From contig OZ176056.1 in assembly GCA_964247055.1 (NCBI GenBank), positions 2,852,001 through 2,916,000 of the forward strand: 64,000 nucleotides of DNA, given 5' to 3'. The notes beneath the pieces are model-generated. The model made no database searches. It saw nothing but the letters and a program-made list of their open reading frames with translations, and was not told the DNA's origin. A program made the translations under genes and the position numbers. The stretch comes from Paragordius varius. Lineage: Eukaryota; Animalia; Nematomorpha. Of the stretch, positions 36,099 to 64,000 are shown piece after piece. How positions within the stretch are numbered: the first letter of the stretch is position 1; every line of letters begins with the position of its first letter.

Positions 36099-37240
36099 GT
36101 AATTAAATTTTTATGATATATTTGATCGGGTAACTGATTCCTATGCTATTTTATCTAATAAGTTAATTTTTGAATGTATCATAATAATAAAAAAGTTGAA
36201 ATAATTTGACCATTTTATGGCTACATTCCTAAAAAAATATTCATAAGGAAATAATCCAAATAATTGTTGTAAATTAAAATAAGTTTAAATATGATCCCTT
36301 TTACGACTACCCCTGTCGCCTATTCATTATACTAAATTTGGTTGTTAGCGAAATTTTCGGGATGAGTTGGCCTAATTTCAAGCAAAAAAAATCAAGCCAA
36401 TTTTTATCCATTAATACAATTTAGAGAAATTCGACAACTTGTTTGGAATCGAATTACTGCAGCTTTTACAACATATTCTTTAATAGCGTTAAATTCTCAT
36501 TATATTGATAATATAATGATTTATCAATATATATTACAATTTCCTAGTTTTTTGCGTAAGATTATTTAGATAAATCTTACTTTGTTTAGTCGTTGTTGAT
36601 TTTGAGATTCAAATAAGTTGTTAAACACTATGGGTTAGTTATTAATTTATGATTGCCAACTTTGTGTTATTTTCCGATTCTCATTAACAATTGTCCAAAT
36701 ATCATTTGATTCCAACGTTAGATCATTTAGTGTTTAAAATCGGGCAGGAAATAGTTTTAACGACCTTAGAAATAAAAGAAGCTTACTGGCAATAGCCCAT
36801 CCACCTCTTGAGTTAGAAAAACACCCTCATAACAATTAGAGGACGACATAATACCCAATAAGTCTTTACACCGGACGAAGAAGTGTACATAAAGAATGAA
36901 ATCGATTCGGGGTGGAGCAAAGGTTCAATTTTGGAGAGAACAGGGGTAGTCTCGTACACGGTTAAAGATGGAAATCGAACCCTTCGCAATCCTGCTGATC
37001 AATTACGGCCGACCGGTGTCGAGAACGGCGGAGAGGGGGATAATAATTTAACGATAAACCAAACAGATGAATGTATTACAACCAATGATCGGGAGTTGGG
37101 GAGGAACAAAGCAAAGAAAAAGAAAACGAGAAAGACACCCAAGTTGAAATGAAAACGGAAAAGACAACTGAAAAAGAACCGGAGAAAGGATATCCTCTTA
37201 GGGAAAGAAAAGCATCGGCTCGGATTCGGATAATGAGATA

Positions 37241-37498
37241 TGATAGATTTGCACATCAGTTAGCTAACCTAAGACTAGATAAATTTATATATTAGTTTTG
37301 AATTCATTTTTGATGACCGTTTATATTTAAATTAAACTATTTTATCAATTTTGAATTTAACCTGCACACGTTATTTTTCCTTGGTTTAACATGCAAATAT
37401 TATATCCAAAAAAAGTATATAAACATCGCTTATATAGTTTAGTTTTTGTATTTTATCTCAATAAATATTCTTGTTTTACGGTTTCTCGAGTCACCACA
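37241..37498 (+). repeat. Third LTR copy created by the tandem duplication
   Basis: Near-identical to 34576-34833. Confidence 0.9.
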
Positions 37499-38692
37499 AT
37501 GTTTTAACAAATATTATAACAGATTAAAACATATGACATGTGGTACTAACAATTTTTGCTAGTTCAACGCCGAAATTCGGGAAGATTTATTCAAAATATT
37601 TGTTAGAGAAAATTAATTTACTAAAATCTAGTATTTAAAATTCGCTAGCCGCAGAAATTTTTTGGAAAGCCGCATCGGCTCGCAAGCGTGTTAAACACCC
37701 CTCATTTAATCAGATCGTCTCAGTTTTAATAGATGGTCCGTGTTTATTATGGCAATTTCAACATAGCATTTATTATAAAGTATACGGAGAAAACTACTAT
37801 CTCGAAATTATTATCGTTATGATAAAGATAGACTTTGTATTTTAAAAACAAATGTAAATACAGACTGCATGAATTGTGTTTCAAGGCGTATGACTTCAAG
37901 AGTTGAGCAAGTATAAATGGTAAATTATAAGAATTAAATATTATTGGTTTCTTTTAATTATTTTCGAATCACCGCAATTTAAGTACCGCCGGCGCACATT
38001 GCAAAAAGCCATCCGCCAAGTTAACTAATTTAGAAAAGTGTATATAACTTATATTAAGTAGACTGCTATCATATTATCTGATTATTACGTATTTAAAAAT
38101 ATATAAAAAATAAATTAAATTTTTTATACTTTTTAAATATGGAAATATGTAAATGCAACTAAACTATCCCAATTTGAATCGAAGGACTGAAATGAATGTG
38201 TTGCATCCAAGTGTTAACTATACCAGGTTTATTTAAACAATATAATAAATACAATTGTTTTTTTATTTTTTTATATAATCAATATACACAAAACAAGCAA
38301 TCAATAGGTTATCTAATTTTATGTGTGAGAGGTCTAGTGCCAGCCTTTTTTTCGTAAAACATCCTAATCAAATCATAAAAATTTGTTATTATATACATTG
38401 AAAATAACATTAACTCAAATGATAGCTAAAAATATTTGGTATGGTAATTGAACTCTAAACACGAACTAATTAACAAGAAAAAAGTTAAGTATTCTTAGTA
38501 TTTAGATTGTTATATACCAAGGTGTAATAAAAAATTTATCATAAAAGGCAAGATAAAAATAATAACAAAATAATTTTTAGAGATACAAAATTGAACTGCC
38601 CTCATCATTTATTAGATTTCCTATTATATTTGTCAGTTATACCTCCCTTTAACAATTATAACTTGGAATTTTCTTTTTTTATTTCAATTGAT

Positions 38693-41600: not shown

Positions 41601-44600
41601 GCTATTATTCAATTCTTTTATTATTATAATAGGATAAACTATTTTTATATTCCCGTTACTTCAAGGCGGTTTTGCTGAAAATTATATATAAAATTTTTTC
41701 AACTATAAAAGCGGCATCACTTATAATAAAATTTTAAATTATCAAATTTTTTTAAACCTACGCTATGACGAAAGGTTAAATTAGGATTAAAAATTGAAAG
41801 TTTTTCTTATAAAATCATGTTTTTAGTTTCCTTTAAACATACTCTGTGGCTGGGGTCGGCACGGTCCAATGTAAGCCCTTGCGCGGACAAATAATCTATA
41901 AAATTTTAAAATAAAAATTTAGAGCCTTCATTTGCTATTATTTATTTATCTATCGTCATACTAACTTGTAAAAATAAAACAGTTTTTAAAAAATAAGTCA
42001 TCATCGGACTTTCACTTAATATAAGAATTTAAAGCCAAACAGTTATCAGAAAATTTGTTTAATTATGTTTATATATATATTATATATATATATATATACA
42101 TATATATAGATCTAGTACCTTCTAGCGGTGATGTTTCTTCCAGATCAATCGACGGTATTATAAATTAAATTAACATATAAACTGAATATATCTCTTCTTA
42201 ATCTTTTAATTGGTTTTCAATGCCAGACCAATTTTTTTTATTTAATAACCGGTGGTATTGTATTAAAATTAAAACACGTGTATTTCAATTTTTTGAAAAA
42301 AAATGATTATATATGAAAATAATTATTTTACACATATAGAACATGTTTGATTTTACTTGAAAATTTATAGGAATTAAGATAACTTATTTGTAAAATATAA
42401 AAATACATCAATTATATTTTTCCTTATCAGAAAAAAATTAAATTGTGAAAAAATTTTTAAACTGCAATTATCGCCTTTTAAAATTTTTTTCCGCATATTT
42501 TTCAAAATGACTAATATTTAATTCTAACTATAATTTATGATAAAAATTTGATCCCTTAAATCAAATTAAAATAAGCACTCAGTTTCAGAAGCATAAATTA
42601 ATATAATTCAATTCTACACCTAAATATTAAGTTTTATCAAACAATTATATCAGGTCCTGAACTAAAACGTTTCCCATTAAGATGTAATCTATATTTTTAT
42701 AAAAATGGAAAAGGCTGGCTTTGTGATCTGGTACAGGAAAACCAGTAGACTAAATATCCAAATATCGAAAAAATATAATCATTAATAAATGTCCCGACAA
42801 TAGCTTCGCCCTTTTTTTGAAATAGGCCCCCAGTTCGGGCCCACCCCGTATGAAAAACGGGTTTTTTTTAAAAACAGAAGTCCACAAAATCGTGTTTTTG
42901 AGACAATTTTCCGGAGAACGTGTTGGACCATTCAATTTCAAATATGATTTTTGTTTACTTATTTTCGATTGCGCTGAACATAGTCGAGTCACTTTTTTGA
43001 TTTAGGCCCTCTTTTTACCCGCTCCCCCCGTAAAATGCCATTTTTTTCAAAAAACAAAGTCCACAAAAATAATTTTTTAAATCGATTTTTCGCCCTAGGT
43101 ATGAGACCGTAAAAATTCAATAAAGATTCCACGTATTCCCTGTTAAAAGGCAAAATTTTTAGTCCACCGTTTATTTGATGATAGCTGCTGAGTAAGGAGT
43201 ACCTATCATATGTATAGCATGTTAAAAGATATATGGATATTAATACATTATTTATGGTAATCTATATATTTATAAAAATGGAAAATGCTGGCTTTGTGAT
43301 CTACAGGAAAAACGGTAGACCCATTCAAATCCAAACTTCAAACCCCCCCTCCCCCAGAAGTCCGAAGGACTTCCTCGGGCTGCGTAGCAGCACGAGATTC
43401 ACGCTAGTATAAAATAAAAATAACCACATTTTTCCCTAATAGCATAATTGAATTCCGCGTATAAACCGTAAATCTATTTTTACAATTGCATCATGTTATA
43501 ATAAAAAGACATTAGGTTTAATGCATATTTTTTTAATATACTAACAAAAATTTTATATTTTTAATTAAACAGGAATTTGAGTTACTAAAACATATTTTGC
43601 TAAAATTGACGTGTTTTATATCAACTACATTCATTCAATCTGTATTTGTCTAATGGGTACTAAACGTGAAATTATCAAATAAATGGGCGGTTTCTTACCA
43701 ACTTGTATTGTGAGGATTCGACACTATAAAAATTAATTTCTTATATCGAATTGGCCGTGGGAAAATATTTTCTAATAAATGAGAAAGGCTGGATTTATAT
43801 GCATATATGTTTTTGAAACTATTTATCCAATTTACCAAAAGATTGAATTATGTTTTCAAGGTATTGCAAAATTTTTTTTTAACATATCATGACATAATTA
43901 TGGCAAAAATATAGGGTGTTACAGATCCCTCAGATTAGTAAAAATATTTAATATGGTTAGTTGTCGTTTTTTATCAATCACTATCTAACCAATTTTGATA
44001 GCTATGATAGTTATATATGTAATATTTAAGATGCTCCATGATATACCTTTGCAAATCTGTTAAAATGTATATTAACTTAGTTCCAAATATCTTTCTTTTA
44101 AGAAACAATAATTTTTTAATGCGAATGAAAAATGACCTCTTTTGTCAAATTATAGATAATATCTTTAAAGAAAAGTCAAAAAATCAGATATTAAATATTG
44201 GGGAATCTTTAAGTATATGGGTCGAGCTAGTGGAAAACTTTTCTAATTTTAATAAAAGTCAATGGAAATTGAATGGTAAAGAAATCACGACAGGTTATAG
44301 ACAAGATTCAAAAACTTATACTTACACAAAAGACATGATCAACTTAACAGATGGAGGAAATTATACCTTTAGCATTGGTTCAAAATCAATAAATATCTCA
44401 GTGAGAATCATTGGTAAATAATGTTAATATATATTAAGTTGTAGTTTTTGATATATAAATATATATTTTTTATAATAAGATACATTTTTTTTATTTAGAA
44501 CCAGTACCAATTACTTATGGCAATAATCAAGTTAAAATTAATTTTTCTCGAGTCATACAAAAAAATCAATTGTACAATGTTACTACATATCAAGACTATT

Positions 44601-47600
44601 ATATAAATCATACCACAAAGAGTTTCTCAGAACTAAGCCCTTACATACATCATTTACCATTTGACACTATATGCATTTCAAATTTGATAGAAGAATACTG
44701 TTTTGATGTATATCCAGGTTATATAATTTTAATTTAATAATATATATACAGCGTCCTAAAAATTTATTGATGAAAAATTTATATTCTGATTTGGAAAATT
44801 TAGAATAGAGTGATATTTTTCATTCTGGTTTTAAAGAGTGATATAAGGAAGTTTTTGGTCAATGCTAAATGCCTTATGCCAAAAAATACTAAAATATGTC
44901 AAAAACAGATGAAAGCAAAACAAAAATTTTAAAAATTATTTGTGGGCTCCACCAAATTTTTTCGCTATTCTAAAATGGGCTACTATTAAAATAAATACAA
45001 AAATGCTGAGATTGCGAGATAAAATGATAATATGCTAAAAATTTAAAAAAAAATAAAAAATTATTTTTCAAAGAAATTAGATATTTTTGATAATATCTTA
45101 AGCTTTTATAATGTTCCCTATCAAAAAATAATTTTGCTAGAAATTGAATTTTTAACCAGCGCCATCACTTATAATAAAATTTTATATCAAAATTTTTAAA
45201 CCTACACTATGACGAAACATATTATTTGGAACAATTTACAAAATATAAAAAATTAATTAATACTTTAAGAGGTTAATTTATTTCATGTAGAAAATTATAA
45301 AGTCTCTAATTTGAAATATGAATATCTACCTGATTTGGATATAAAATTGATTTGGTCAACTTACAGCCCAAAAGTGAAAATATATGATGGATATAATTGT
45401 GAGAATTTTATAAACGAAACATCCGAGCACGCATACATTATAAAATACGCAACTATTAGCAAGAAAAATCAAACTTATTGTTTACAAACTGTGAATCAAA
45501 GCGAAAATTTGTTTGAAAGGATAGCCGTAACAATACCAACAAGTATTATTTAGTTATAATTGTGAGACAATCAAAAGATGTAAAAAATAGATTTTATATT
45601 ACCATAAAACTTGTTTTGCAAACTTCCGTCAAATTAGGATTAAAAATTCAAATTTTTTCTTATAAAATCATGTTTTTAGCTTTTAAACATATTCTGCGGC
45701 TGGGGTCGGCACGGTCCAATGTAAGCCCTTACGCGGACAATATCTATAAAAATTTAAAAAAAAAGTTAAGAGCCTTCATATATGTTATGTATAATAACTT
45801 AATTGTTTTTGTTAACTTAACTCAATTGATCTTATTTTAGTTACCTTATGAAAATATAATATCCTTACCTTTGTGCATAATACACCTTTGTACTTGTTAC
45901 GCTAAAAATGTATATTATCTTGGTTGTGAATGCTTTTACCTAAATACTGTAATATTGAGCCTTATGCAAATATATAACTTGTGAATGCTTTCATCTAAAT
46001 ATTGAAATATTTAACCTTATGCAAAAATGCAACCTCGCTCTTAAACTATATATAATGGAACATAGTTTTTTATGATATAAAATAAATTCCTTTTTTTTCG
46101 CTTATTACATTTGGCGCGGTCGATTTTTTATTGTATTACGTTGTATTCATTATTATGGAAAAAATAAGTATTGAAAGTTATAAAATCAATAATAATTTTA
46201 CGGAATATATTAAATATTTACGAAGAAATTTAGTAATTAAAGGAATACAGGATAATAATGAAAATATTAAAGCCATCTTTCTTGCCCAATCCGGTATTGA
46301 TAACATTTCTAAAATGGAACAATTCTTTTACCCCGTTAATATTGAAAACATATCTTGGGAGGAGATTTATGAAGCTGGGGTGAATATTTCAGCCAACCAA
46401 AAATACTTTTTTATCCCGATTCGATTTTTTTAGAGCGGAACGATTAGCGGGTGAAGGATTCTTGGAATTTTTTATAAGACTCAAAAATATGGCCGCTGCA
46501 TGCGAATTCAAAGTAAACGTTGACGAATTAATACGGGACGTGTTTATATGTGGGTTTAACGAGAAAAAACTAGAGACTGAACTGCTGAACAGGTACCCAA
46601 AGGCATTAGACAACGACATACCAGTGGGATTAAATAAGGTTCTAAATTTGGCATTAGCGTATGAAAATTATCACCTTGAAGTGAACTCAGTGAGAGCAAT
46701 ATATAATAATAAAAGTATTAATAATGGTAATAATAATGGTAATACTAATGGTAATAATAATGAAACTTTTAATGATGGTAATATTAATAATAATGAAATA
46801 TATATGGTAAGACGCAAACCTGTCGTAAAATCGTGTTTTAAATGCGGTCGCGCCCACAAATACGGATGCTGCCCAGCGTTTGGGATGGTATGTTTCAAAT
46901 GTCAGGGTAGAAATCATTTCGGAAGCCAATGCCAAAACAAATATGCTGGCAATAACAGGTATGTGAATAATATCGTAAATAAACCTAAAATAAATGTAAA
47001 AATAAACTCAACCCACGTCGAAATGTTATTCGACACGGGGGCGGACATATCTTTAATAAATTTTAGCACGTGGGTTAAAATAGGAAAGCCTAAAATAAAA
47101 CCCATTTATTTTAACATAAACACTTATGATAATAATCCTTTACACATAATAGGAGAGACAACTGTAACTCTTGAATTAATAAAATAAAAAAGATAACAAA
47201 ATGCTTTATAACGAAGAGACATCTTCCTCTAATATTTGGCATGGATTGGATCCAGCTATTCAATATCTCATTGCCTAACGAATTATATATTAATAAATTA
47301 TATCACACAAATGATATTTACAAATATTTAAGTCTTTATTTGATAACAAATTGGGTTGTTGGAAAGGGGAACCCATAAAGATATTTTTAGAAAACAATAG
47401 TAGGGGACGGGTATTTCCGGCTAGAAGGGTTCCCTTGGCCTTACAAGAGAAATTAAGTGAAGAGATTAAAAGGCTAGTATCCTTAAAAATTATTGAACCA
47501 GTAGACCCCAAGCAGTTTAAAATTTGTTGGTCCAGTCCTATAGTAAACGTATTAAAGTCAAATAATGAATTAAGAATATGCGCAGATTTTAAAGTGTCCA

Positions 47601-50600
47601 TAAACAAATACATTAAAACACCTCAATATATAATACTCACATTTGATGATTTGATTTCCAAAATTTCACATGGTAAGACGTTTTCAACATTAGATTAAAA
47701 AGATGCTTATCTTCAGATTCCAGTGCATCCGGAATTTCAAAATCTTCTCACAATATCCACATCTCTTGGGTTTTTTAAAGATACTAGGCTCCCTTTTGGT
47801 CTGTCGTGCGCACCTAGTTTTTTCCAACAAATCATGGATGAGCTATTAGGAGATTGTAAGGGAACAGCGGTCTATTTAGTGTAATTGTTACGGGGGAAAC
47901 GGATGAGGAGCATTATAGAAACCTAACACAAGTATTTGAAAGATTAGAACGAATGGGTCTTAAATTAAAAAAAGATAAAATAATGCTTTTTCAAAAGGAA
48001 GTAGAATATTTGGGGTTTACTATATCAGAAAAAAGTATAAAACCAGCGAGCAGTAAGATTAAAGCCATTCGCAAGTGTCCAGCCCCTAAAGATAAAACAA
48101 GTCTTCGTGCGTTTTTGGGCCTTTTAAACTTTCATTCACGATTTATACCTTCTCTAAATACAATTGTTAACGAACTCCATCAGCTACTGGTTCCAAAAAA
48201 AATGGTGTTGGACCGAGGTACACCAAAATATTTTTGAACGAAGTTATTAATAGGGCATAACAGCCGCCTCTTCCCTTTTAACCCCAGACTTCCCCTTATT
48301 CTAGAAACGGATGCATCTGGGGAGGGGTTTGGGGCCATTTTGTCGCATAGAACGTCGGAAGGTAAACGACCCATTGCATATTTTTCAAAATGTTCCCCGG
48401 CAGAGAAAAATTATTCGGTTATAGAAAAAGAGGCAAAAGCCATTGTATTGGCCCTAGAGATATTTAAACATTTTTATATGGTAGAAAATTTGAGATTAGA
48501 ACAGATCATAAACCTCTTATCAAATTATTCGGGCAGCAACGTGTATTAAGCGAGCTAAACAATAGTAAATTACTAAGATGGATTTCAAAAACATCCATTT
48601 TCGACTTCAACATAATGTACTACCCAGGAACCGAAAATCTAGCAGATTCACTATCAAGACTACCAACTGAGATAACTGAAGAGTGTGACAATGACGAGGA
48701 TATAGCGCAGGAGGTCCGGTTGCAATGGTGTCAGGAGTTAAACTTAAACAAGGAGAGGGTGCATAAGGAAACTATGAGCGATGAGACGTGTAAACAGATT
48801 AAAGCAGCACGAAAGACTAATGATTGGTCTCATCCGGGGGTGCAGTCCTATAAACCACTGAGGAATGATATCGAAGAATCATACGGCCTTCTATATTTAG
48901 GTGACCGCCTTATTGTGCCTCAAAGCATGAGGGTTGATGTTCTTAACTATCTTCATAAAGGTCACCCAGGTATACAGTCCATGAAAGCGTTAGGTAAGAG
49001 TGGTGTGTTTTGGCCGAAATTGAACCAGGATATCGAAAAATGGGTGCAAGGCTGCTCAAATTGTCAAAAGTCACGGTTTAACATTGCAGTAAGCCCGACG
49101 TATAAATGGAATCCGAACACCACCGTTTGGGAGCGATTGCATCTCGATATAGCGGGGCCCGTAGAGAACCTTTCTGGGTCATACTTATAGATCACTGCAC
49201 CCATTAGGTGGAAGTAGCACAGCTTAAAACAGTGAACTCGATCAGTATTTTGAAAGTTTTAGAAGGTTGGTTTGCACGATATGGCACCCCAGATGTGATC
49301 GTAACTGATAATGCGTCGTATTTTAAGTCCGGTGATTTTGAAAGAATATTAAGTTCCTCTAATATCAAGCATGTAACCTCTGCGCCATACCACCCTCGGA
49401 CAAATGGTTTAGTGGAAAGTGTCATTCAAACATTGAAAACGCACTATTATATGTGTTCTGAAGTAGCAGATACAGAACGCCGGTTAAACCAGGTACTGTG
49501 GGCTTACAGATCAGCACATCACAATGGTATAAATGAGACACCCGTACGACTATTCCTAAAACGAAATATACCGACACCGCTGTCCTGGATGAAAGGCAAA
49601 CCAAAGGATTATATCGATGGTACCTCAGATAATATACGTGAGTTCGTTCCAGGTGAGAAAGTGTTTATAAAAAATGAGTTGGAAGCCGGTTGGCGAGAGG
49701 GAAAAATTGTAGAGCGGACTGGATTATTGTCCTACAATATCGAAGATAGAGGGAGGGTTTTACGAAAGCATACGGATCAATTAAGAAGGCGAAAAGAGGT
49801 CCCGATGAACTTAAGCTAGACGACCCGAAAGAATTAGAATCGGAACAACAGAATAATAATGATAATATTATAGCCACCCCATTGCATGGTCCTCCTATTG
49901 ATGACAATATTAATAATGATGATACCAATCCTTCCCCGGATATTTGTCAAGATTTCCACAATAATCAGCAAAGTCCCAACGGCGATAAGATTGCAGAACC
50001 CCCAAGCCTCGAAGTACCAGTGGAGAGACGCTATCCTACCAGTAGCCGAAAAGCCCCTGACAGATACACAAATCACTTTTAAATTAGATAGGAGATATGT
50101 TATGTATAATAACTTAATTGTTTTTGTTAACTTAACTCAATCGTATTTTAGTTACCTTATGAAAATATAATATCCTTACCTTTGTGCATAATACACCTTT
50201 GTATACGCTAAAAATGTATATTATCTTGGTTGTGAATGCTTTCATCTAAATATTGAAATATTTAACCTTATGCAAAAATGCAACCTCGCTCTTAAACTAT
50301 ATATAATGGAACATAGTTTTTTATGATATAAAATTCCTTTTTTTCGCTTATTACAATATACTATTATTAATTTTCTATAGTCATACTAACTTGTAGAAAT
50401 AAAACAGTTGTTAAAACATAAGTCATCGTTGTACTTTCAATTAATATAGAATTTAAAGAAAAACAGTTATCAGAAAATTTGTTTAATTATGTTTATTTAA
50501 ACGTCATGTTCCCAAAATTACCTAGCTTAAAAAAAGTATATACATTATATATAATATATCGTATTTAATTGCAAATTTCTACAACAGATATATTTTTACC

Positions 50601-53600
50601 AACACCCAAAAAAATTGTTGTGAATGTTGGGCAAAAGTTAGAACTTTTTGTCAGACTAGCAATCAAAATTCAAAATTGCACAGGAATCTGGCAAATAAAT
50701 GGAACCGAAATTAAAGATGGTTTTACGAAAAAATGGAATTCGTACACATATGTAAGAGCGAATGTTAGCAAAAATGATACTGGAACATACACATTTGTGG
50801 TTGGACCCAAATCAATAAGCATTAATGTGAAAGTTATAGGTAAATCTATTTTATAATAATCTATTTATTTTTTTATAATTTTAATATACTATAATAATTC
50901 CAATATCATTTACATTTCAAATTCACCCTTGAACAATTCGAATTTAGTTTTTCAAAAAAATATTAACTATATTTTATATTTCATATAATTAAATATTTTT
51001 TATAATTGAAATATGAAAATAAAACCTAAGTTATAAAAATATAATTAATGATTAATATTAGCCTGAAAACACATGTTTTTTAGGGTGAATATGATTTGTA
51101 AATGGTATATATTCTAATAAAAAATCTATCTGGATACTATAATGGCTGAGGTATATAATCTTAGGAGTTATTTAATAAAATAACTTTCGTAGGTAAATAT
51201 ATTCGGAAAGGGAAATGCCTGAAAATTATCATGATAACAGTGCCAAAAATGCTGTTTACAATTATGCTTCATAATCAAATATATCACTAAAATATATCTA
51301 TTACATATTTAAAAATAATACTTAAAATTTTTTTAAAAGTTTTTATTTTTTCGCTAAATAGTGTAGTTCTCTTAACACTTGGATACAACACATTCATTTT
51401 GGTCCTTGGATTCAAATTGGGGTAGTTGAACCATGCCTGTTAAAAATTAAATAATATAACACTTCTATTCAAATTGGGGTATCTAAATACCCCAGACTAA
51501 ATTTAAATTAGGATTTTAAAAAACTATTGAATGAAACGGTCCCAATTTAAATTTATGCATCTATCCTTATAAAAATTACATAAATATGCCAAAATATGTA
51601 AATAAAATTTTTTTTTTGAATAAAAAGTTCCATCTCAAACTCCTTCGACGCCATTTTTATTTTAAATTTTTTTGCAAAATATCGTCTTCTAATAATTTTA
51701 GGGTAAATTTAAAGCTAATATCTTATTTAAATTACATATAAAATTGATAAAAATAGAAAAAGCCGTTTATTTTGTAATATTTTTCAATTTTATCATTGAA
51801 CAGATGTCAGGTTGACTAAATTTTTACCTCTCGCTTTTAAAATAAGTAATATCAAGTATTTTTGAATAAAACTTTTGATATATTTTGGTTTATTAATGTT
51901 ATATAAGTGCAAAATTTTGCAATGGTTTCGATTCTTTCCATATTTTTTAAATAATTTAATTTTAAACAGGCCTTGGGTATTTATTTACCCCAATTTGAAT
52001 CGAAGGACTAAAATGAATGTGTTGTATCCAAGTGTTAAGAATTATGGAAGGAATATAAACCATGACAATTTTGCACTTATATAACATTAATAAACCGGAA
52101 TATATAAAAAAATTTCAAAAATACTTGATATTACTCATTTTAAGGTAAAACCTAAAGGTAATTTAGTCAAAGTCGCATATCATTGATTAATACAAAAAAA
52201 CCACTTTTTTTATAGATATCAATTTTAGATATGATTTAAATAAAAAATTAGTTTTACTATACCATGAAAATAAATGAACACGATATTTTGAAAAAAATTT
52301 GCAAAACAAAAATTGCGTCCAAGTAGTTGGGCATGAAAATTTTTTTCAAATTAAATTTTATTTAGATATTTTAGCTTATTTATATAATTTTTATTGGGAT
52401 AGAAGCATGAATTTTAATTAGGACTGTTTCCTTCAGTAGTTTTTTTTTACATTTTAAATTTAATTAGGTCTGTTTAATCCAAATTGAATCAAAGTGTTCA
52501 AATGACACAAAGATGCTGAGCGCGCTGAAAAATTTAATTTTATCCTAAATTATAACTTAAAATATTATTTAAAACTGCAGTTTTAAATTTTAAAAATTAA
52601 CTATTATATTATGTTAATATTCTGTCCCATATTCATACTATTTTTTGGTATGAAAACGGGATAAAAACACTAATATATATTTAAAAATATTGTTAATATA
52701 ATAATGATAAACATTTTTAATATCTCAAACTTTAAATATTCGTTAATTTATGATTCATCTTAAATATTTTTTTACAAAATTCCATCTAAATTTTAAAGGA
52801 AAGGCTTTTAATTGAAATTTTGCGTAAGTAGTGTTCAGCATCATCAAATTATATAGAATTAAAGTAAAGTGTTTTTATGCGGTTTCTATTATAAAATTGT
52901 ACGAAATACGTTCCAACAATGTTAAAAATAAATTTTTGAAAAAAAAGGATGCATTTTTTAAAAAATAATTTTAGTTAATAAAATTTAGCTTAATTTATCA
53001 TATTTATTGCGCCTCGGCATTTTTGCCTTTATTGTAAGAGAACAGCCCATTATAAAAGAACCAAAAAGTTTGGGACTTTTGGAGCCCCAATCCTATAACT
53101 AATTCTTTTAAAATAATTGTTTGGCTTTTTATTAGTAGTTTATTATATATTATATATTTAAAATAAAGCTTATAGCTTTTAAAGAAAATTATCTGAAAAA
53201 ATGTGTGCAGATTTTGTCAATTCTATATTAAGTATAGTAAAAAAGTGTTCTATATTGCTCGTAAGTAAAAGGAAATGCACCAAGATATTCCCAATATAAA
53301 TCCTTATCAAAATATTATTATATCAGGGTATCTTTTTGTTACCCCCCATTGGAAGCAGTGTGATACTGAGCATCTTTATTTTAGGCTAAATGCTTTATTT
53401 CAAAAATATTATAGTATTACATACTATAATTTAAAGCAGAACAATATCTTAATATTTTAACTTCAAAAGTGGTCCAAGTCTCAAAATATTTAAACCGTTA
53501 AATGGTCTAGTTATCTTAAAAAACGCAATGCGGATGAGATAACAACATTTTTAATATATAATTGTTTCGCAATATGTTGAACATATTTTTAGATGCAATG

Positions 53601-56600
53601 TATAAAACACTTTAAGGAATTTGAAAATATTTGAATGCCAAATGTTAGAATAGGGTTCGAGGTTTAATTAAGTTCAACATCAACGATATATATATAGAAA
53701 AGGGGTATATATACAAAGGTTTGTTTTACCGTTTCACCATACTCGAAAACATCTTAAAATACGCATCAAAATTTTATAAAATTATAACTTTTAACCAAAC
53801 TAGGCTTTTAATATAATGTTTGATGTTATATCCCATATATGCAAATTCTTATCGCAAAATTTAGTTTATTTTAGAAGGCGTCAAATATATATGACGTTCG
53901 AGACTCACATCTTATAATTAGAATTAAAGAAGCTTGCTTTCTTTTAATACTCCTGACATTTTGGGGTAATATACCCTATCCTTTTACCTTTTATAGACGC
54001 TTGCAAAAAAAATTTATTTAAAATTCCTTATTTAATACTTTTTACACGCCATTTTTTCAATTATTTAAATCGCTAGTACAACATGCAATAAATAAATATG
54101 TTGGTTGAACAACGTAAGCAATTAACTTTCGAAGGCTCTAATTACGATTTAACACCAAATTTTCGTAATTGATTTCGATATCAGTTGTGCTTTTGAATCT
54201 GTTCTGGAGCTATCTATATTTAGGGCTCTGGAAAAAATTAAAATATAAGTTTTTTACACCCTGTGTCACTGCGTAAAAATTTATTTCTTAGATAGCCCAG
54301 CGAATTCATTTGGCGAAAAAAATTAATTTATAGATGACCTGGTTGAAAGAGAAAATTTAAATTTAGCATCTCTTATCATTTAATTTAACACAATAAAATA
54401 CTTATAAGATTAATAAATTATATTTTTTGAGTAATACTGTTTTATTTTGGAATCCTACCTGAGCGGGAAGTGGAATTCAACGATCTGCATACAGGTTTAC
54501 ATATAATATTTTTACTGAGATTTACGGATATTGGTTGAAATTACATTAATTGTAAATCCTATTTTGCATTAATTTATATAGATTTGATTCCTGCTCATAT
54601 AAATTCCAAAATAAAACAGTTAAATATTTTATTAATTTTATTTAATATATGCGTTTTTAGTATAAATTATAAATGTTAATAAATTTAAAGTTAAAAAATT
54701 TTTAAGTTCATAACATTTTAATTGTGTAAGAAATATGTTAAAGGTTTAAACAGGATTTTTGATCTGAGTTTTAATAAAACCCTAATTATATGATTTTAAG
54801 CTATTAAATATGTAAATATCTGATATCTATAAATAATTAAATATCTCAAGTTTAGATTATTTTTTCCTTGAATAGATTTAATTTCCCGATTTTTGCCCAA
54901 CTTTGATTTTTCAAATTTAATAAAAAACAAATTACAATTTTTGTGGCATCGCTGGTTATAGGCTATCATATAATAACTCTTTTTGCTTGCAAACAGGGTG
55001 CAACATAAGATGCGATAATTTAGTATACAATCTTAAAATGAAGATTAACATATATATATATATATATATATATTGCATTACTTATACAAAAATTGCTTAT
55101 GATTATTATTATTAATACGTGAAATAGATCAATTCAATGACAACGTTTTTTTAGTTGTTACTTATTAAGCAGAATTTTCTTAATATATGAAAGCGACTGT
55201 TATAGTTATTACGACCATTTATACTAATAATTTGTTTTATTTATAAAGATCCTTTAGTATCCAAACTCTATCCCGATCAGGTTACAACTGATTTTTCACC
55301 AGTTGTGGAACAAAATCAAACTTATTATGTTAGTATTTATGAAAATGAATTTGAAGTTAACGAAGAATATATAAGGAATAATACCCAACTAACACCCTAC
55401 ACATATGAAATACCTCCAAATTTTGAGGGATCATATACTTTTTGTATCACCGCTTCTTTCGAGGAATATTGTGCGGAGGAGATTGATATTCCAGGTTAAT
55501 ATTTTTAGTATAATCTTATAAGTTCATGCGGATCATTATGCAATTTTTAAATTTTATCTAAAACCTCATCGTGTTAAGTGAAAACGAGTTTAGGTGGTTT
55601 CAAAGCCACGCGAGACAAAAATATGGAATTCAAAATTTTATATTTTTAAAACTCTATAAAGATCATAATTTGGCTGGTTTAATTTATTTTTTTCCATGAA
55701 CATTTATGAAGTGGATATTGAGCCATGTTTTTCCCGAGAGTTATGACGGAAGAGGCCACTAAGCATATATGATCATAATTCATAATTTTACGTTTAAAAT
55801 TAATTGTTAAATCCCTCATATAATTGTAAAATTGTCAAACCTGTATTCTCGCTAATATTTATTCCGGATGACTATATTTTAAATTCTGAAATGTTAATAT
55901 ATATAAGATAAATGATAAAAGGTTTATTAACTTTTATATATTATTACAAAAGGAATTATGCTAGATAAATTTATTAAATGACTAGGGAAGCGATGGTCAA
56001 AACCACTGGCAACAAAACGGGGTTTAATAATTGATGCTATGAAAAATATATCGCCAATACCTAAAAGTTTTAAGATACGTATAAATTGACTGAGAATACG
56101 GTTAAGCTAGAAAAAGTTTTTGGTAATTTATAATTGACTAAAGTAAATCGCATCTTCACCCTACACCAGGGCAAAAAAATAAAAAACAAGGTACCATCAG
56201 CAAAAATTTATTCGTTAATATGATGTGGAAACATAAATTTAAAAGCTAAATGTTATTTAATCTGTCGTATTTCAGCAGGGTCTTGGGGGCCTAAATATTA
56301 GCTTAAACATTACGATTTGCTTCAAATATGAATAAAATTTATGTGCGGATAAAATTCTATTTATTTTACCATACACTTACTAGATATTAAGAACGTACCC
56401 AATATATAACTCAAAAATAGCAGCAAGATAATAAATATTAACAGTCCTCGAATATTTTCATATTATAAATATTTTTGATGTGATAAAATAATTTTGGCAC
56501 CATTTTCGCTTTGGGTTTTATGTATAACAATCCATGTATAAAAATAAAGTCAATTCTTTTTCTACATAAGATTTTACAGAATAAATATAAATATTGGAAA

Positions 56601-59600
56601 TTAATTATACTCAATTTCCAATGCATATTATCTAAATCTATATAATGTATATCATATATATCATATATAAAGGTGTAGTCATAAGTTTTTATTGTTTTTT
56701 GGTTAAACAAATAGATAAATTAGAGAATCATTTATTGTTTAATATGTACACGGCTTCACATTTCGCCCTTGAAGGTTTTGTTGAATCATTTATCAATGTT
56801 CTCCAAATTAATGAAGTAGTGCTTTATTAGGTTGAGCTTCATTGATGTAAAGATGTAATAATCAGATAGAGTCAGTTGAGCAGGGCGGATGCAAAATTTT
56901 TTTTTCATCATACAGATTTTAAGGCGTGAATCAGCTGTGTGAGACGAAAAATTGTTACGTAGCGAATCACTTTGTCATTTCTGGCTGGGAGGTTTTTCGA
57001 GTAATGCATCGTTTAAATTAATCGAGTTGCTTATTAATGGTCTCCATAGCTTTAAACATAATAAAAATACCAGTAACACATGTTATTTCTAAAGCGATTC
57101 AGGTATTTGTGTTAATGGACCCTTGGCAAAGTAAAGACGATTATTTTCGTTTAGCATTTATAATGAAGCTTTTTTCATCATCAGTCACATTTAGTGCAAA
57201 AACACCTCATGACGCTTAAGCAGGTTTCGGAAGTCACTTAATAATTTTCATGTTTATTTAAATTGTGTAGGCCTTTTTTTACCAAGTTTGGCCAATCCCA
57301 TTGCTAGACGCCTGCTGAATATCCAAACATGGAATGCTATTGCCAACTGTTGATTTCGAATTGGGTCCTATATCCAATAACTATTGTACCTGATCGTCTA
57401 TGTGGTCAACCAGAAAGACCACGGTTCTTGAACACAATTTTTGAAACCATTTAACGTGATTTAATTGGGATAGCATGTGTTAAAATGACGTTTTTTTTAA
57501 ACCTTTTTTTGATGAAACAAAACATTCTTAGCGTTCTGAAAATGTTCTTCGAAGTCAGAAAATTTGATATAATTACCGAGTGATAAAATAAAACGCTACC
57601 TTTTTGCGGAATCGAAATGCTTATATAGTTTAATATCAAATGAAAAGTTCTATATAAAATCGATCGTTTGCCCACTTTTTGCTCATGTCTTCTCTTAGTT
57701 AGGTAATTACATAAATTTATATCACAATGTGAGTTTGTGGGAAGGTGTTTTCAATATGCAATTTTAACTTACTTCCATTTAAAAATCAGAAGATTGCAAG
57801 GTAATTAGCATCAGTTATTATTAAAATATTGATTATATAGTTTATTATAGGGAAGTTTACTTTCACTATGGTTGCCCTAATTTTTTACCGCATTGTTCTC
57901 TTTAAAATCCAAAATTATAAAATATAACATTAGAAAATATGATAAAGGAGCCTAAATTAAGTATTTTAATTTTATACCTGTTTTAATATTAAAACAGTAT
58001 ATAATTTGTACTAAATAATCTCAAATTAAATATAACAAATCTAAAAATCATGATTTTAACTTAGACTCACTTAAAATTAATTCATTTTCCCTTTATGCAA
58101 AGATTAAATTAAAAAATTGTAATATTTTCAAATTATTATCATTAAAATTAGTATCTTTTTCATGTTAGTTATTCAGTATAAAAGGAAGGTGAATATATTT
58201 AACTAAAATAAATGTATATCTATTTACTTTTTTTTCCTTTAGCCATGCCGAGTGTCAATATACATTTTACGACGCAAAAAAATGGTGTAAACCTATCTTG
58301 GACAGAATATAACGGGGTATCGTATTCACTAACCGCTAATGGAAAAATGTTTAAGAATAATATTAAACCAAAATATTTCATTACATATGAGCTGCTTCAA
58401 TCAAATAAATTAATTTTTACTGCATACAACAAGAGAGGAGAAACCAATTTTACTATACCTGAAAGTAAATTTTAAATGAAAATAACATTATGCATCGTTA
58501 TTTATTTATTATTAATTGTAATTATAATTAAATTCTATCAATTATATTAAAATTTAAAAATTATTCAGATGAATAGTCCCAGATTTTTCTCTTTAAAAAT
58601 ATTAATGGTTTTTGTTTGTAATGGGTCGCGTTCACTCTTATACAATTATTATTGAGTAAAAAATAATGGTTTATTATGGCACTGCTAATAATATTCCCAT
58701 ATATAATTATAACATAGCACCTATAATATCCGCAATAAGACCGAGAGAAATAGGGGAAAAAACTACTAAAATAGAGTGGGATTCCAATGTCAACTTTTTT
58801 AACATATTTGAAGGCGAAAACTGCGAAAATTGGTTAAACCATACATCCAATCCATCTTATAGTGTATTCTTAAATGCGTCGACCAAGAAAATATGTATTA
58901 GTGGTAGCAATGGATACTTCTCTGGCCCAATCAAAACTTTTGTCCTTAAACCAACAAGTATGTGCAATATATGTTTTAACATGTTTTATATCACATGTTA
59001 TGCCAACAAATTAATATTGCCACCTACCCACGGTGTTGGCTTAGGCATGAAAATGCCCAAACGGCAAAGGCCAGTTTCTAATGATCAGTAAAATCATTAG
59101 TTGTACACAAGGGCATTTGCACTACGTAAAAATTGCATCAGATTACCAAAAATATTATAAATATGAATTTCGTGGTACGAAAACTACGAATCCGGAGTCC
59201 TACCCTATGATGATGTATCACATGTTAGTATATTATTTACAGTTCAAATTCACCCTTGAAAAACTCAAATTCAACCTCGTCAATTCAATTCGCCCTAAAC
59301 TGAATTATGTGCTTTTTAAGATTAAAACTTACCTTATTTTTTAATATTTTTAAAATATGAAACTCTGTTTAAAATTAATATAATGCTGATATCGTAAAAA
59401 TATATCTCATATTACTGATAAGTTATGTTAGAACTAGGGTTGTGCTGACCAAGTTATGACCGGTCAATTGACCGAGTCATGACCAGGTCAGTGAATATTT
59501 ATTTTTTAACCATGGTCATTTAAAAAAACAACTGTTTTTGAAAAATTGAATTTTTTTTGGAAGAAAGATATAAAGATTGTATAGTTTTTTAATATATTTT

Positions 59601-62600
59601 CTAAAAAATATATTTTAAATATGCTTATTTAACAATATGATATTGTTAAACATGCATTTTTATAACATTAGGATTTAATATCCAGTTATTTCGAAAAACA
59701 AAACAATCAAGAGCTTTTCAAAATATGGAATTATTCCATATCTGTGAACCAATAAAATGAATAACATTATATAATTGTATATTTTAATGATGAAAGAAAG
59801 TGTCAAACAAACTAGGTAAAATTTAATTTGAAATATCCAGTATAAGCTATGTATTTGAAGCTTCAGAAGGCCACAAACATGTGGCAAAATTCAATTTTAT
59901 ACAAATTTCTTGATTAAATTTGGTTAATATTTGTAAATAAATATTAAAAAAATGTATACTACAATCTTTTTAAAAAATATGATATTATTAGTGAAACGCA
60001 AGTGTAATTCGAACTTTATTTTGACAATCCAAAATCGCAAGATACTTAATTAAGTAAAAAGTGGTCATGACCCTGACTGGGTCTGACCGGACTTTTTTGA
60101 AAAAGCAGTCAAATGCACAACCCTAATTAGAACACATAATATATTTGTAGGGTAGATTCGAATTGTTGAAGAGCGAATTTGAATTGTTCGTTAGGCCATT
60201 TTTTCATTTTGACTAATTATAAAATATGCAGTAAATTTTTGAATTCTTCATATAACCTCTCTTAAAAACAACCGCAAAATCTTATAAATTATTAATATAT
60301 GATTATGAAATTTCAATATATTTGGTAAAAAAAAAAGTTTAAAGTTATATTGCCTAACACTTCATGTTTCAATTTTTTCCCGAGTGACATATTGGGATAG
60401 TTGTATATCTAAGAGATCCATTATAAGTTAAACTACTGTTTTGAAAGTTATTTTGGTAAAAAATTATCAAACATTGTCAGGTAAGATAAAAAAGCATATA
60501 CTTTTTTTACAGATTTGTGACTACTAGAGTCCAAAAAAAATCGGAACAGCTCATATAAAAAATATATATCATGTTTTCGCTGATATTTGCAAAGTTAATT
60601 ATTTACCTTTTTAACCATAAAATACACTTTATTAGCCTTGTTGCATTGGCGATTTAATAAAAATTATAGAAAAAATGGCGGTGAAAAGTTAGAGATGAAA
60701 ATTGTTTTAAAAATTTGTATAATGCGCCAAAGCACTAAAGAATATACCTTAAATCAGGGGTATCTAACACAAATGGCTTAAAGAGCCACATTTAAATTAA
60801 TATAATTCAAGACAAAAGTATCAAATAAATATATTCCTCAAACTTTCATAGATGTGTTAATTTTTATATTAAACTAGCGTGAATCTCGTGCTGCTACGCA
60901 GCCCGAGGAAGTCCTTCGGACTTCTGGGGAGGGGGGGGGGTTCGAAGTTTGGATTTGAATGGGTCTACCGTTTTTCCTGTAGATCACAAAGCCAGCATTT
61001 TCCATTTTTATAAATATATAGATTACCATAAATAATGTATTAATATCCATATATCTTTTAACATGCTATACATATGATAGATACTCCTTACTCAGCATCT
61101 ATCATCAAAGAAACGCTTGACTAAAATTTTTGCCTTTTAACAGGCAATACGAAAAAACTTTCTCGAATTTTTCCAGTCTCATACCGTGGGCAAAAAAATA
61201 CAATCAAAAAATTATTTTTGTGGACTTTGTTTTTTGAAAAAAATGGCATTTTTTGGGGGGAGCGGGTAAAAAGAGGACCTAAATCAAAAAGTGACTCGAC
61301 TATGTTCGGCGCAATCGAAAATAAGTAAACAAAAATCATATTTGAAATTGAATGGTCCAACACGTTCTCCGGAAAATTGTCTCAAAAACACGATTTTGTG
61401 GACTTCTGTTTTTAAAAAAACCCGTTTTTCATACGGGGTGGGCCCAAACTGGGGACCTAATTCCAAAAAAGGGCGAAGCTATTGTCGGGGCATTCATTAA
61501 TGATTAAATTTTTCCGATATTTGGATTTAAATGGCTCCACCGGTTTTCCGGAAACAGATCACAAAGTTATATGAAAAATCAGTTTTTAGCGGGTAGCTCC
61601 TTACCCAGCAGCTATCATCAAATAAACGGTGGACTAAAATTTTTGCCTTTTAACAGGGAATACGTAGAATCTTTATTGAATTTTTACGGTCTCATACCTA
61701 GGGCGAAAAATCGATTTAAAAAATTATTTTTGTGGACTTTGTTTTTTGAAAAAAATGGCATTTTACGGGGGGAGCGGGTAAAAAGAGGGCCTAAATCAAG
61801 TGACTCGACTATATTCGGCGCAATCGAAAATAAGTAAACAAAAATCATATTTGAAATTGAATGGTCCAATACGTTCTCCGGAAAATTGTCTCAAAAACAC
61901 GATTTTGTGGACTTCTGTTTTTAAAAAAACCCGTTTTTCATACGGGGTGGGCCCGAACTGGGGACCTATTTCAAAAAAAGGGCGAAGCTATTGTCGGGAC
62001 CTTTATTAATGATTATATTTTTTCGATATTTGGATTTGATTGGATCTACCGGTTTTCCTGTACCAGATCAAGCCAGCATTTTCCATTTTTATAAATATAT
62101 AGATTAAAAAAAACAACCATAGTGTGAGACGCGTATCGTCCTTGTTAAGGACTTATTCATAATGAACACAAGCATACTCTGTCAGTATTTTAAGATTTTA
62201 AGACGAGTGATAACGAAAGAGAAAACAGAGAACTTAAGGCCTAGAGAGGGCAACCAATTGTAGTTAGATCAAGCTAATTATCATAATTCCTTCTTATCCA
62301 TCAGCCAGGATAGGGAATTTATAATTAAAATTCACCAATTTTTTGGTGGCCATTTTTATATTTAAGGGTAGGCTAATATTTACGATCTCCATATTATGTT
62401 GTTATTAAATATAAAAATGGCTTTTTCCGCCAAGATTTTTGTGAATTTTAACTAATAAAAATATAAAATTTTGCTGTTAAATTGTACTTGAATGGAAAAT
62501 TAAACTTTTTATAAAGATCTGCTAATGATGAAAGCACAATTATATAATATAGCATGATGTATATTTTTCACAAGGACAACTTAAACCACCTTACTTAAAA

Positions 62601-64000
62601 TCCTGCTGTACTATGTTTAGCATGCAATATTTATATAAAAGATATTAGAAAAAAATGTATGGACTACCGAATCTTTTATAATTGTATTAAAATAAATCCG
62701 ACATCCTAATATAGATCAATATTAACAATGAGCTGCTTGTTTCACCGTTTTGAACATATTCTTTACAATGACCCATGTAATGAAATGTAGTTATTTTTAT
62801 ATAATAATCTGCTTTATAGCACAATTCAAAAATATGGCTTTTCACTAAATAAATAAAAAACATTTACCAATTCTAAATATTTTCCAATATATAATTTATA
62901 ATTCCAATAATATGGGTAGTTGTAAAAGGTAACAAAGCTATGAAACGTAAAACTGAAAAGATATTTATTCGGTTTTTTGTGTTTATATATATACTATAGT
63001 GAACATAATTTGCATGATAACAATAAAATTTCGAGTAACAAAGGATATGATATTTACATAGTACAAAAAAATATAAAAATAAGACAATGCAAATCTCACA
63101 AAAGATTATAGTATACAAACAAAATATATATTCATATGTTACAGTATTGCATCTTAAAAATGGGACTGGGGTTTTCAATATGGCTCTTTTACAAAATAAT
63201 TATCAAAAAGTTTAGCAGTGGAAGTATTCTAAAGATTCTCAGATTGTAAAGGAATGATTCAATGAATGTGATGAAAAATAATAAAAAATATTATGAAAAT
63301 GCTCGTTTTTGAGTTTTTATTTCAAATCGCTCAGAGATATACAACTCCCCCAAAATGTCATAGATATAAATACCACCTTTATATTATAGTTTTTTCGACA
63401 AATATATGAATATATAAATCCTAATTCTCTATTAAAAATTAATGCGTTTACATATATGAAATTATGTGAATTGTATATCCAAAATTTTTGTTTAATATTA
63501 GTAATAATTATTTATATACAATTAGTTTATTCTGGCTCTGGTACAAAGGACCCTGGTTTCCAATCAAGTTATAAAAGAAAAGGTATTATTTTTTGTTAGG
63601 TTTTTGCATTTAAATGAAACAAAAGTTGCGTTTGGATTGCGTTTTTGGTTAAAAAAAAGTTTTATTAAAAAAATAGTGCGATATATGCCTATTATTATTT
63701 TGCTTTCCTCTATAACTTAGGTCAAGATGATGGGTCTGGATTACGGCATTCTGGTTATAGGGGAAAAGGTATGTTTTTTATATAATTATGTTTTCTAAAA
63801 CTAGAATATGATTTGACTGGCATACAGAAAAGTTAGCATTCAAAGTTCCTTTAAAATCCTTCATAATACTCTAATGATTTACTACTATATCAATAGTTTG
63901 CAGTTTGCTGGAAATCTTTTAGTTTATTGTTTTTAAAATGTGTAAGACATGATTTTTCCTCGTCACATATTATCTTTTAATAAAAAAATAAAAATTGTAG
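38693..64000 (+). CDS. Secreted Ig/FN3-like modular protein gene, copy B (exons 38693-38762, 41554-41586?, 44156-44413, 44499-44717, 45291-45542, 50588-50839, 55249-55494, 58243-58464, 58718-58957, 63526-63582, 63721-63768; last exon beyond window)
   Basis: Nine internal exons are open, phase 1-1 and multiples of 3 (258, 219, 252, 252, 246, 222, 240, 57, 48 nt). Joining them into one transcript is inferred. No transmembrane exon was found. Confidence 0.7.
39628..41129 (-). mobile_element. Degenerate hAT (GTF2IRD2/Charlie-like) element in intron 1
   Basis: Minus-strand motifs IQLSATCARRIEDMS, ICTDGYPSMIG, FHCFIHQQNL. Ends caagagtgtccaac and tttgaggatcactg, approximate. Confidence 0.8.
41554..41586 (+). 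CDS. Candidate micro-exon 2 (DEPVSGSGIFP)
   Basis: Good acceptor tatacag|AT, GC-rich island, Ser-Gly motif like the 3' micro-exons. The donor reads cca|gtaaat (phase 0), one G short of the expected phase 1. Confidence 0.4.
42688..43407 (+). mobile_element. Non-autonomous Helitron
   Basis: A|TC at 42688, hairpin 43374-43396, CTAG|T at 43404-43407. Same family as 3036-4263 with one fewer ~510-bp unit. Confidence 0.9.
44156..44413 (+). CDS. Ig-like domain exon 1 (cysteine-less I-set-like)
   Basis: tatag|AT...ATT G|gtaaat. LNIGESLSIWV...QWKLNGKEI...TDGGNYTFSIG carries the C-strand Trp and DxGxY motif with Phe in place of Cys. Confidence 0.8.
44499..44717 (+). CDS. Two-Cys FN3-like exon 'a1' (missed by the ORF track)
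   Basis: atttag|AA CCA...CCA G|gttata, 219 nt open. EPVPITYGNNQVKINFS...ICISNLIEEYCFDVYP is homologous to 55249-55494. The fold assignment is tentative. Confidence 0.75.
45291..45542 (+). CDS. Two-Cys FN3-like exon 'c1'
   Basis: atgtag|AA...ACA A|gtatta, 252 nt. KLIWS...IYDGYNCENFINETSEHAY...YCL matches IEWD...IFEGENCENWLNHTSNPSY...ICI of 58718-58957. Confidence 0.78.
45783..50355 (+). mobile_element. Full-length Mag-like Ty3/Gypsy LTR retrotransposon, inactivated, in an intron
   Basis: LTRs 45783-46109 and 50098-50355 (TG...CA), 5-bp TSD ATATA, PBS TTGGCGCGGTCG, PPT before 50098, internal gag-pol. Confidence 0.97.
46131..49819 (+). pseudogene. Gag-Pol (double CCHC knuckle, protease LFDTGAD, RT, RNase H, integrase)
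   Basis: CFKCGRAH..CCPA..VCFKC..NHF, LFDTGAD, LRICADF, LILETDAS, HKGHPG, RLHLDIAGP, IVTDNA, PYHPRTNGLVE. Several frameshifts and stops; YLDD has lost 4 nt near 47879. Confidence 0.95.
50588..50839 (+). CDS. Ig-like domain exon 2 (paralog of 44156-44413)
   Basis: caacag|AT...ATA G|gtaaat. VNVGQKLELFV...IWQINGTEI...NDTGTYTFVVG. Confidence 0.8.
50900..51110. mobile_element. Small MITE with ~30-bp imperfect TIR
   Basis: tatcatttacatttcaaattcaccct versus agggtgaatatgatttgtaaatggtata. The core ttcaaattcaccct recurs at ~1403 and ~59243. Confidence 0.45.
51376..52034. mobile_element. piggyBac-type MITE
   Basis: TTAA on both sides; TIRs begin CACTTGGATACAACACATTCATTTT and match well for ~45 bp, loosely to ~90 bp. 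Solo ends of this family at ~35500 and ~38165. Confidence 0.75.
55249..55494 (+). CDS. Two-Cys FN3-like exon 'a2'
   Basis: ataaag|AT CCT...CCA G|gttaat, 246 nt open. DPLVSKLYPDQVTTDFS...FCITASFEEYCAEEIDIP. Confidence 0.78.
56881..57480 (-). mobile_element. Possible decayed hAT fragment
   Basis: TIR-like cagggcggatgca at 56881 and weak minus-strand similarity to N-terminal regions of ZMYM-type transposases (LLDIGP...; GSIN...CV..IF). Confidence 0.25.
58243..58464 (+). CDS. FN3-type exon (copy B)
   Basis: Identical to 614-835. Confidence 0.8.
58718..58957 (+). CDS. Two-Cys FN3-like exon 'c2' (copy B), hypervariable
   Basis: aacatag|CA CCT...ACA A|gtatgt, 240 nt open. PIISAIRP...KIEWDSN...ENCENW...KICISGSNGYFSGP. 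Confidence 0.8.
59001..59215 (+). mobile_element. 215-bp retroposon-like insertion (SINE or 5'-truncated LINE)
   Basis: Absent from copy A, where a single tatcacatgtta sits at ~1376-1387. Flanked by the 12-bp direct repeat TATCACATGTTA (58989-59000, 59216-59227) and ends in ATGATGATG. Confidence 0.8.
59435..60125. mobile_element. hAT MITE (copy of 1603-2288)
   Basis: Same TIR and TSD. Confidence 0.8.
60874..62103 (-). mobile_element. Non-autonomous Helitron (copy of 3036-4263)
   Basis: Same A|TC...hairpin...CTAG|T ends. Confidence 0.85.
63526..63768 (+). CDS. Two Ser-Gly micro-exons (63526-63582, 63721-63768), copy B
   Basis: Identical to 5682-5738 and 5876-5923. Confidence 0.7.

Follow-up and report, generated by a model that had tools for sequence, protein, structure and literature searches.

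In the class I and class II genes of the MHC (major histocompatibility complex) the peptide-binding exons are flanked by homogenised introns. In Dscam the variants form a tandem array inside a single gene, with splicing selecting among them, and duplications are known that fix two alleles on one chromosome, as for ace-1 in Culex. Where exchange homogenises duplicates except at places where a difference is kept, a 'peak of divergence' is expected, and such a peak between duplicates under conversion has been described for exon 5 of the primate red and green opsins (Teshima and Innan 2008; PMC3924837). In alr2 of Hydractinia the variation is found in one extracellular domain exon and chimeric alleles occur; 35 alleles and codons with a raised ratio of nonsynonymous to synonymous substitutions (dN/dS) are known and the function has been proven genetically (PMC3342096). 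Here we describe a stretch of 64,000 nucleotides from the nematomorph Paragordius varius (GCA_964247055.1, contig OZ176056.1, positions 2,852,001 to 2,916,000 of the forward strand), called the window in the following, which carries at its two ends the copies A and B of a duplicated segment that are almost identical apart from one variable exon and the adjoining part of the intron in front of it. This mosaic is real and well bounded and belongs to an undescribed gene family. We favour, at a probability of roughly 55%, the explanation that old variants of the exon have been retained in flanks that were homogenised by conversion or recombination.

The opsin peak resembles this locus in that linked copies, whose introns are nearly identical by exchange, show a peak centred on one exon where conversion is not tolerated. 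The peak described here is far higher, with differences in 26% of the nucleotides and 45% of the residues as well as four indels, and it covers a whole domain whereas only two tuning residues are concerned in the opsins; furthermore other individuals look single-copy here. As in the MHC, old and very different exon lineages lie in young, recombined flanks, replacements equal or exceed silent changes in frequency and recombinants are seen, but the fold is FN3-like and not that of an MHC groove, the excess of dN over dS is not significant, and there are two full versions in place of an allele series. With alr2 the locus shares the concentration of variation in one extracellular domain exon of a putative beta-sandwich surface protein and a probable recombination between structural types, although what was seen here are two complete versions and pieces of further ones, which have no sequence relation to alr2. 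A duplication of the ace-1 type would explain the presence of two versions 57 kb apart, the allele-like divergence of the flanks and the single-copy state in others, but neither a phenotype nor a heterozygote advantage is known for this one and its limits lie outside the window. Dscam1 is similar in that one beta-sandwich domain comes in alternative versions, each encoded by a cassette exon; in contrast, the versions described here do not form a tandem array but are located about 57 kb from each other in separate copies of the whole segment, and other genes lie in between.

Results and Discussion

Using self-BLAST and global alignment, copy A was located at 1 to 6155 and copy B at 57630 to 64000, both on the forward strand. 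Outside the island of divergence both are 99.5% identical, and as their match begins at base 1 and finishes at base 64000 the duplication continues past both ends of the window. Between the copies lie 51 kb of other genes, including serpin and transposon genes. Each copy contains a phase 1-1 domain exon of 222 nt (614 to 835 in A and 58243 to 58464 in B, both on the forward strand), which appears FN3-like by eye without confirmation by Pfam and which, as already stated in an earlier note on this DNA, is the same in both copies (0/222 differences). The variable exon follows. Its version A (1096 to 1344, forward strand) comprises 249 nt or 83 codons with two Cys and the sequons NIS and NAS, and its version B (58718 to 58957, forward strand) comprises 240 nt or 80 codons with two Cys and the sequons NHT and NAS. 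The two versions are about 57.6 kb apart, each beside its own copy of the 222-nt exon. Both are open, phase 1-1, begin after AG and end before GT, and both cysteines, the splice sites and the frame are indeed kept in the two exons, as the earlier note had claimed.

The island contains 76 mismatches between A and B in 314 positions (24%) and the flanks only 30 in 5796 (0.5%; Fisher p 6e-77), confirming that the divergence stays restricted to a single domain exon of extracellular type with homogenised flanks around it. In the first 613 bp of the alignment, located before the 222-nt exon, the divergence is 0.7%. The intron after this exon shows no mismatch at 836 to 935, 4% at 936 to 1005 and 18.6% in its last 90 bp (1006 to 1095), and this step inside the intron is significant (p 0.007). 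The intronic part of the island, in which the divergence rises from 4% to 19%, covers 936 to 1095 in copy A and, by alignment to it, 58562 to 58717 in copy B (both on the forward strand). In the variable exon itself the nucleotide difference is 26% plus indels. Only one mismatch was found at positions +1 to +31 past the exon, the remaining 4.8 kb show 0.4–0.7%, and from 2600 to 6155 every window of 100 bases has three differences or fewer. The divergence had been described as rising towards the exon and fading after it; we do see the gradual change on the upstream side, whereas at the 3' end of the exon the island comes to an abrupt stop.

The silent sites of the exon show a p-distance of 0.186, and the same value of 0.186 was obtained for the last 90 bp of the adjoining intron, which is about 35 times that of the flanks. 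As silent sites and adjoining intron are equally diverged, the patch is older in its ancestry and did not just evolve fast at the protein level. The two exon versions are deeply diverged, with approximately 0.2 substitutions per site at silent sites and in the final 90 bp of the intron upstream of the exon compared to approximately 0.005 on either side, and such a contrast means that the common ancestor of the patch is much older than that of its surroundings. Gene conversion or crossing-over, recurring between copies or alleles, might keep wiping out the differences in the flanks, and exchanges replacing the exon might either be rejected by selection for differing versions or be blocked by the heterology itself. 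The stepwise rise on the upstream side, from 0 to 4% and 19% (p 0.007), fits better to several exchanges with different end points than to a single one. Judged from the alignment, an exon-sized exchange by gene conversion or recombination is the most economical mechanism, and the value of about 0.2 for silent sites and intron, 35-fold that of the flanks, supports the exon-sized gene conversion already suggested in the earlier note.

A similar mosaic could also result from a very recent duplication followed by one ectopic conversion tract of approximately 0.4–0.65 kb, which one of the copies received from a more distant family member located elsewhere in the genome, with no selection for diversity being involved. 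Such a length is typical of conversion, the island ends sharply on its 3' side, dN/dS does not exceed 1 significantly (see below), and a diverged family member is indeed present nearby, as a third, distant paralogue of the variable exon was found at 45291 to 45542 (forward strand, phase 1-1) with 27% amino-acid identity to B and the same two Cys. However, no donor of either island was found when the 64-kb window was searched for one, the stepwise upstream gradient does not look like one clean tract, and the break points differ in their position within the exon among other samples and relatives, so that we regard a one-off import as possible but unlikely. Diverged intron on the upstream side only would also be expected if the ancestral gene had carried tandem, mutually exclusive versions of the exon and each copy had deleted a different one after the recent duplication, as the proximal intron of B would then descend from the spacer between the two exons, and all exons being phase 1-1 cassettes is in line with this. 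Yet such a reciprocal loss requires two independent and nearly exact deletions, and no remnant of a second exon was seen in either copy, which makes it highly improbable.

To take a closer look at the protein level we compared both versions in a codon alignment. From the 75 alignable codons 41 encode identical residues and 34 amino-acid differences were found, and the two versions are further separated by four in-frame indel blocks of 6, 1, 2 and 2 codons. The method of Nei and Gojobori gave 8.7 synonymous differences (Sd) over 46.7 sites and 50.3 nonsynonymous differences (Nd) over 178.3 sites, corresponding to a dS of 0.21 and a dN of 0.35. These numbers replace the earlier hand count of 21 nonsynonymous versus 3 synonymous codons and two indel blocks. 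Depending on the method dN/dS was 1.66 (NG86), 1.86 (YN00), 2.13 (maximum likelihood) or 2.98 (LWL85). The differences are spread evenly over the three codon positions (17/24/18). Random substitution at the observed density gave a stop-free outcome in only about 4% of the trials, and the chance of all four indels being multiples of three is about 1/81. Hydrophobic core positions and the NAS sequon are retained in both versions. By the best explanation, selection still acts on both versions as coding sequence, with replacements being no less frequent than silent changes.

For version B an AlphaFold model based on an alignment of three sequences (predicted local distance difference test, pLDDT, 74) shows a seven-strand sandwich. 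Nearly all of its 50 best matches in the PDB are FN3 domains, with template modelling (TM) scores of 0.6–0.76 among the top matches, and the matches among the clusters of the AlphaFold database (AFDB) agree with FN3; domains of CD148 and CD45 are among the PDB and AFDB matches. The variable exon is therefore best explained as encoding one domain of the fibronectin-III fold, as predicted from the model of version B. Pfam fn3 gave no match at E values up to 10 for version A, version B, the 222-nt exon or the third paralogue. Judged by secondary structure, the 34 replacements are distributed over all strands and loops and do not point to a single set of loops; the loops C-C' (GENCE), E-F and F-G are least changed. 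A word-indexed protein search with the 141-aa open reading frame (ORF) around exon B, in which only proteins of 78–247 aa can be found, gave no match, and a profile of the three variable exons searched against 1.84 billion representatives found no true homologue but only two spurious repeat proteins.

In order to see the locus in other samples we used reads in the form of Logan contigs aligned to 57400–60399 (copy B) only, with the runs X1 and X3 being from other individuals and X5 and X7 from close relatives. A contig of X1 spanning 58532–58937, and thus the edge of the island and the exon, is 100% identical to B, and a contig of X3 reaching from the adjoining intron through the exon's 5' half (58636–58831) shows one difference from B. 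Copy B, but not copy A, also carries a high-copy repeat insertion of 215 bp (59001 to 59215) 43 bp past the exon, which is flanked by a 12-bp target-site duplication (58989–59000 and 59216–59227) and has its empty site in copy A at approximately 1364–1375. As this empty site is clean, copy A was not simply copied from the B haplotype in recent times. The insertion has a word depth of 3e4–5e4 and is present in X1, X3 and X5, with further contigs of X1 spanning it, while in X7 depth is absent over most of 59001–59215. Finding version B contiguous, and the edge of the island and the insertion present, in non-reference samples shows that all three are real and that version B is not the product of a chimeric assembly, a possibility that the earlier note had named. 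The intron past the variable exon (59000–60200, corresponding to 1376–2400 in A) consists of very high-copy repeats, with contig word depths of 1e4–2e5 compared to about 1e3 in unique DNA.

Additional variation was observed in all four runs. In X1 a second form at about half the depth carries four changes within 58951–59002 including Pro78Ser, and in X3 a variant of about 20% is present at 58572–58635. The contig of X5 tracks B exactly to 58783 and that of X7 to 58879, after which both are unlike B, although their flanks are 99.6–100% alike. These contig fragments suggest more exon versions, and break points inside the exon, among close relatives. X5 also has a minor form of the 222-nt exon, reaching about one quarter of the depth, in which a stretch of 35 bases (58301–58335) carries four changes, showing that this exon is not invariant everywhere.

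Several results weigh against the retention of old exon variants as explanation. For the exon alone dN/dS is not significantly above 1 (bootstrap 95% interval 0.85–4.0, Fisher p 0.26). With the silent sites and the diverged 90 bp of the intron pooled as neutral standard the ratio is 1.66 (interval 1.01–2.85, one-sided p 0.04), a borderline result of a test that was chosen post hoc. The diversifying selection proposed in the earlier note is thus in agreement with the point estimates, which range from 1.66 to 2.98 and all exceed 1, but the interval of 0.85–4.0 includes 1 and significance is not reached on the exon alone; from the codon alignment such selection on the variable exon is suggestive. 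The AlphaFold model of version A, also from a three-sequence alignment, is poor (pLDDT 49), the Trp of the B-strand is missing from this version, and when the exon was sought in RNA runs none of its words was found in five very small ones. Furthermore, much the same picture would arise if one import had come in from a third, unseen paralogue. One could also imagine relaxed constraint, with neutral differences and with the exon of one copy, probably that of A, being out of use and in decay, as dN/dS is compatible with 1, the changes are even over the codon positions, the model of A is poor and no transcripts were found. Decay, however, cannot lead to a 35-fold divergence in one patch of 0.4 kb while 6 kb of neighbouring intron stay at 0.5%, and it would hardly leave the frame open (chance about 0.04), all four indels in frame (about 1/81) and both Cys and both splice sites in place, and we give it very little credit.

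The number of copies in other individuals is a further point on this side. X1 and X3 have a single letter at every flank site where A and B differ, these letters being A-like at 57757, 58146, 58488 and 60327 and B-like at 58102, 58556–58567 and 59778. In X1 the depths of single contigs, which we preferred over summed bin depth, are alike for the flanks (1135–1348, with one contig at 1859) and exon B (1352), although contig depth, as the tool itself warns, is a weak measure of copy number. For the A stretch the word share is 0.61–0.74 and thus near the estimate expected if the A island is absent. By this weak measure of depth the locus looks single-copy and B-type in X1 and X3 with version A not being evident, and the earlier assumption of two fixed paralogs would not hold for these individuals; outside the reference, two paralogs in concerted evolution are no more than a possibility.

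From these data it could be argued that the two versions are alleles of one locus, which appear as copies owing to a mis-join of haplotypes or because two different alleles were caught by a young copy-number variant, with the divergence of the exon being an ancient polymorphism. The flanks of A and B diverge by 0.5%, which resembles the value of about 0.3% by which other individuals differ from the reference. Every differing flank site has a single letter in X1 and X3, giving a mosaic of A and B letters, their flank depth equals that of exon B, and the word shares of the A stretch fit an absent A island. On the other hand, the window has no N gaps and 51 kb of other genes separate the copies, a full tandem repeat of 57.6 kb is unsupported, and contig depth is a poor measure of copy number. 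X1 and X3 also depart from the window at 57913–57916 and 60319, where A and B agree, and these shared letters suggest that A and B are closest to each other in their flanks. All in all we consider it quite unlikely that A and B are alleles of one locus, and retained old exon versions within homogenised flanks, be they fixed paralogs, alleles or two alleles captured by a copy-number variant, remain the explanation that we prefer.

Regarding the gene to which the variable exon belongs, the window contains scattered phase 1-1 exons for beta-sandwich domains, and all exons that were checked have this phase. Upstream of the third paralogue at 45291–45542 are a Cys-less Ig-like exon (ORF 44140–44418) and a two-Cys domain exon (44459–44734). 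Similarly, a Cys-less Ig-like exon of phase 1-1 is located upstream of copy B (50588 to 50839, forward strand), which is 37% identical to the exon in ORF 44140–44418 and for which the Pfam match to Ig_3/I-set is weak and under the cut-off, and an ORF at 55206 to 55496 (forward strand) contains a beta-rich two-Cys domain exon paralogous to 44459–44734 (31% identity, E 6e-11). Pfam searches over all domain exons gave no fn3 and only weak Ig matches below the cut-off. As the whole family is fast-evolving, it is the identity of the A and B flanks that is unusual and not the divergence of the exon. An ORF with a signal-peptide-like end at 38531 to 38767 (forward strand), which has a twin at 35867–36103, is a candidate for the first exon of an Ig/FN3 mosaic gene. 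Both lie inside a 2.6-kb tandem duplication of about 99% identity (34089–36700 and 36701–39364), each unit of which also carries a retrotransposon integrase remnant. An LTR (long terminal repeat) retrotransposon (approximately 45628–50496) separates the third variable-type exon from the next Ig-like exon.

The exons could belong to one long secreted mosaic gene or to two genes in tandem. The product is apparently a secreted, unannotated protein built from whole-domain Ig-like and FN3-like exons of phase 1-1, and the signal-peptide-like exon and the N-glycosylation sequons are the only pointers to its presumed extracellular location. The identical micro-exons mentioned in the earlier note could not be located, and scans of 1345–9000 and 1345–6200 and the ORF list of 1345–13000 gave nothing convincing for downstream micro-exons or a transmembrane exon. 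The earlier note had also taken the exon for the domain that determines specificity in a self/non-self or host-interaction family. Neither transcripts nor homologues were found to back this, the signal-peptide-like exon and the glycosylation sequons being the only functional clues, and such a role is speculation. That the exon is a cassette of a population-wide, exon-swapping hypervariable system, in which a large, unannotated family of secreted Ig/FN3 mosaic proteins would keep many old versions of single domain exons and shuffle them by conversion as an invertebrate recognition repertoire, appears rather doubtful to us.

The rest of the window is AT-rich, with a GC content of 24–41% per 2-kb window that is mostly below 33%, contains no N bases, and holds transposon ORFs and serpin fragments besides the domain exons. 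Serpin-like ORFs are found on both strands, at 18283–18693 (+) and 24587–24958 (-), and the only GNRFG-coding site within the window is at 23960–23973 (-). A full tandem repeat of 57.6 kb was considered and is unsupported, as there is no GNRFG-coding serpin site at about 18.5 kb but only the one at 23960 (-). Three successive ORFs at 14030–15849 resemble a frame-shifted hAT-type transposase. At 3014–4266, 42685–43429 (in inverted orientation), 12598–12930 and 60852–62106, a repeat of about 500 bp forms tandem pairs and is also found dispersed, with an identity of 85–96%; it is probably a non-autonomous transposon. The LTR retrotransposon at 45628–50496 has gag/pol ORFs at 46462–49819 and LTR-like ends at approximately 45628–46109 and 50095–50496, which are only about 91–96% alike, and a related solo piece is present at approximately 41710–42072.

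Conclusion

In summary we have described two versions of one exon, located in two copies of a segment of the P. varius genome, that make a clean natural example of a 'peak of divergence', the contrast at its silent sites being unusually high at about 35-fold. Should they go back to a single conversion event or to a quirk of assembly or copy number, the case would be an ordinary one. If the versions have been long-lived by selection, the exon would mark the working surface of a lineage-restricted secreted family that is in no database, and it might then serve as an entry point to the function of these Ig/FN3 mosaic genes.

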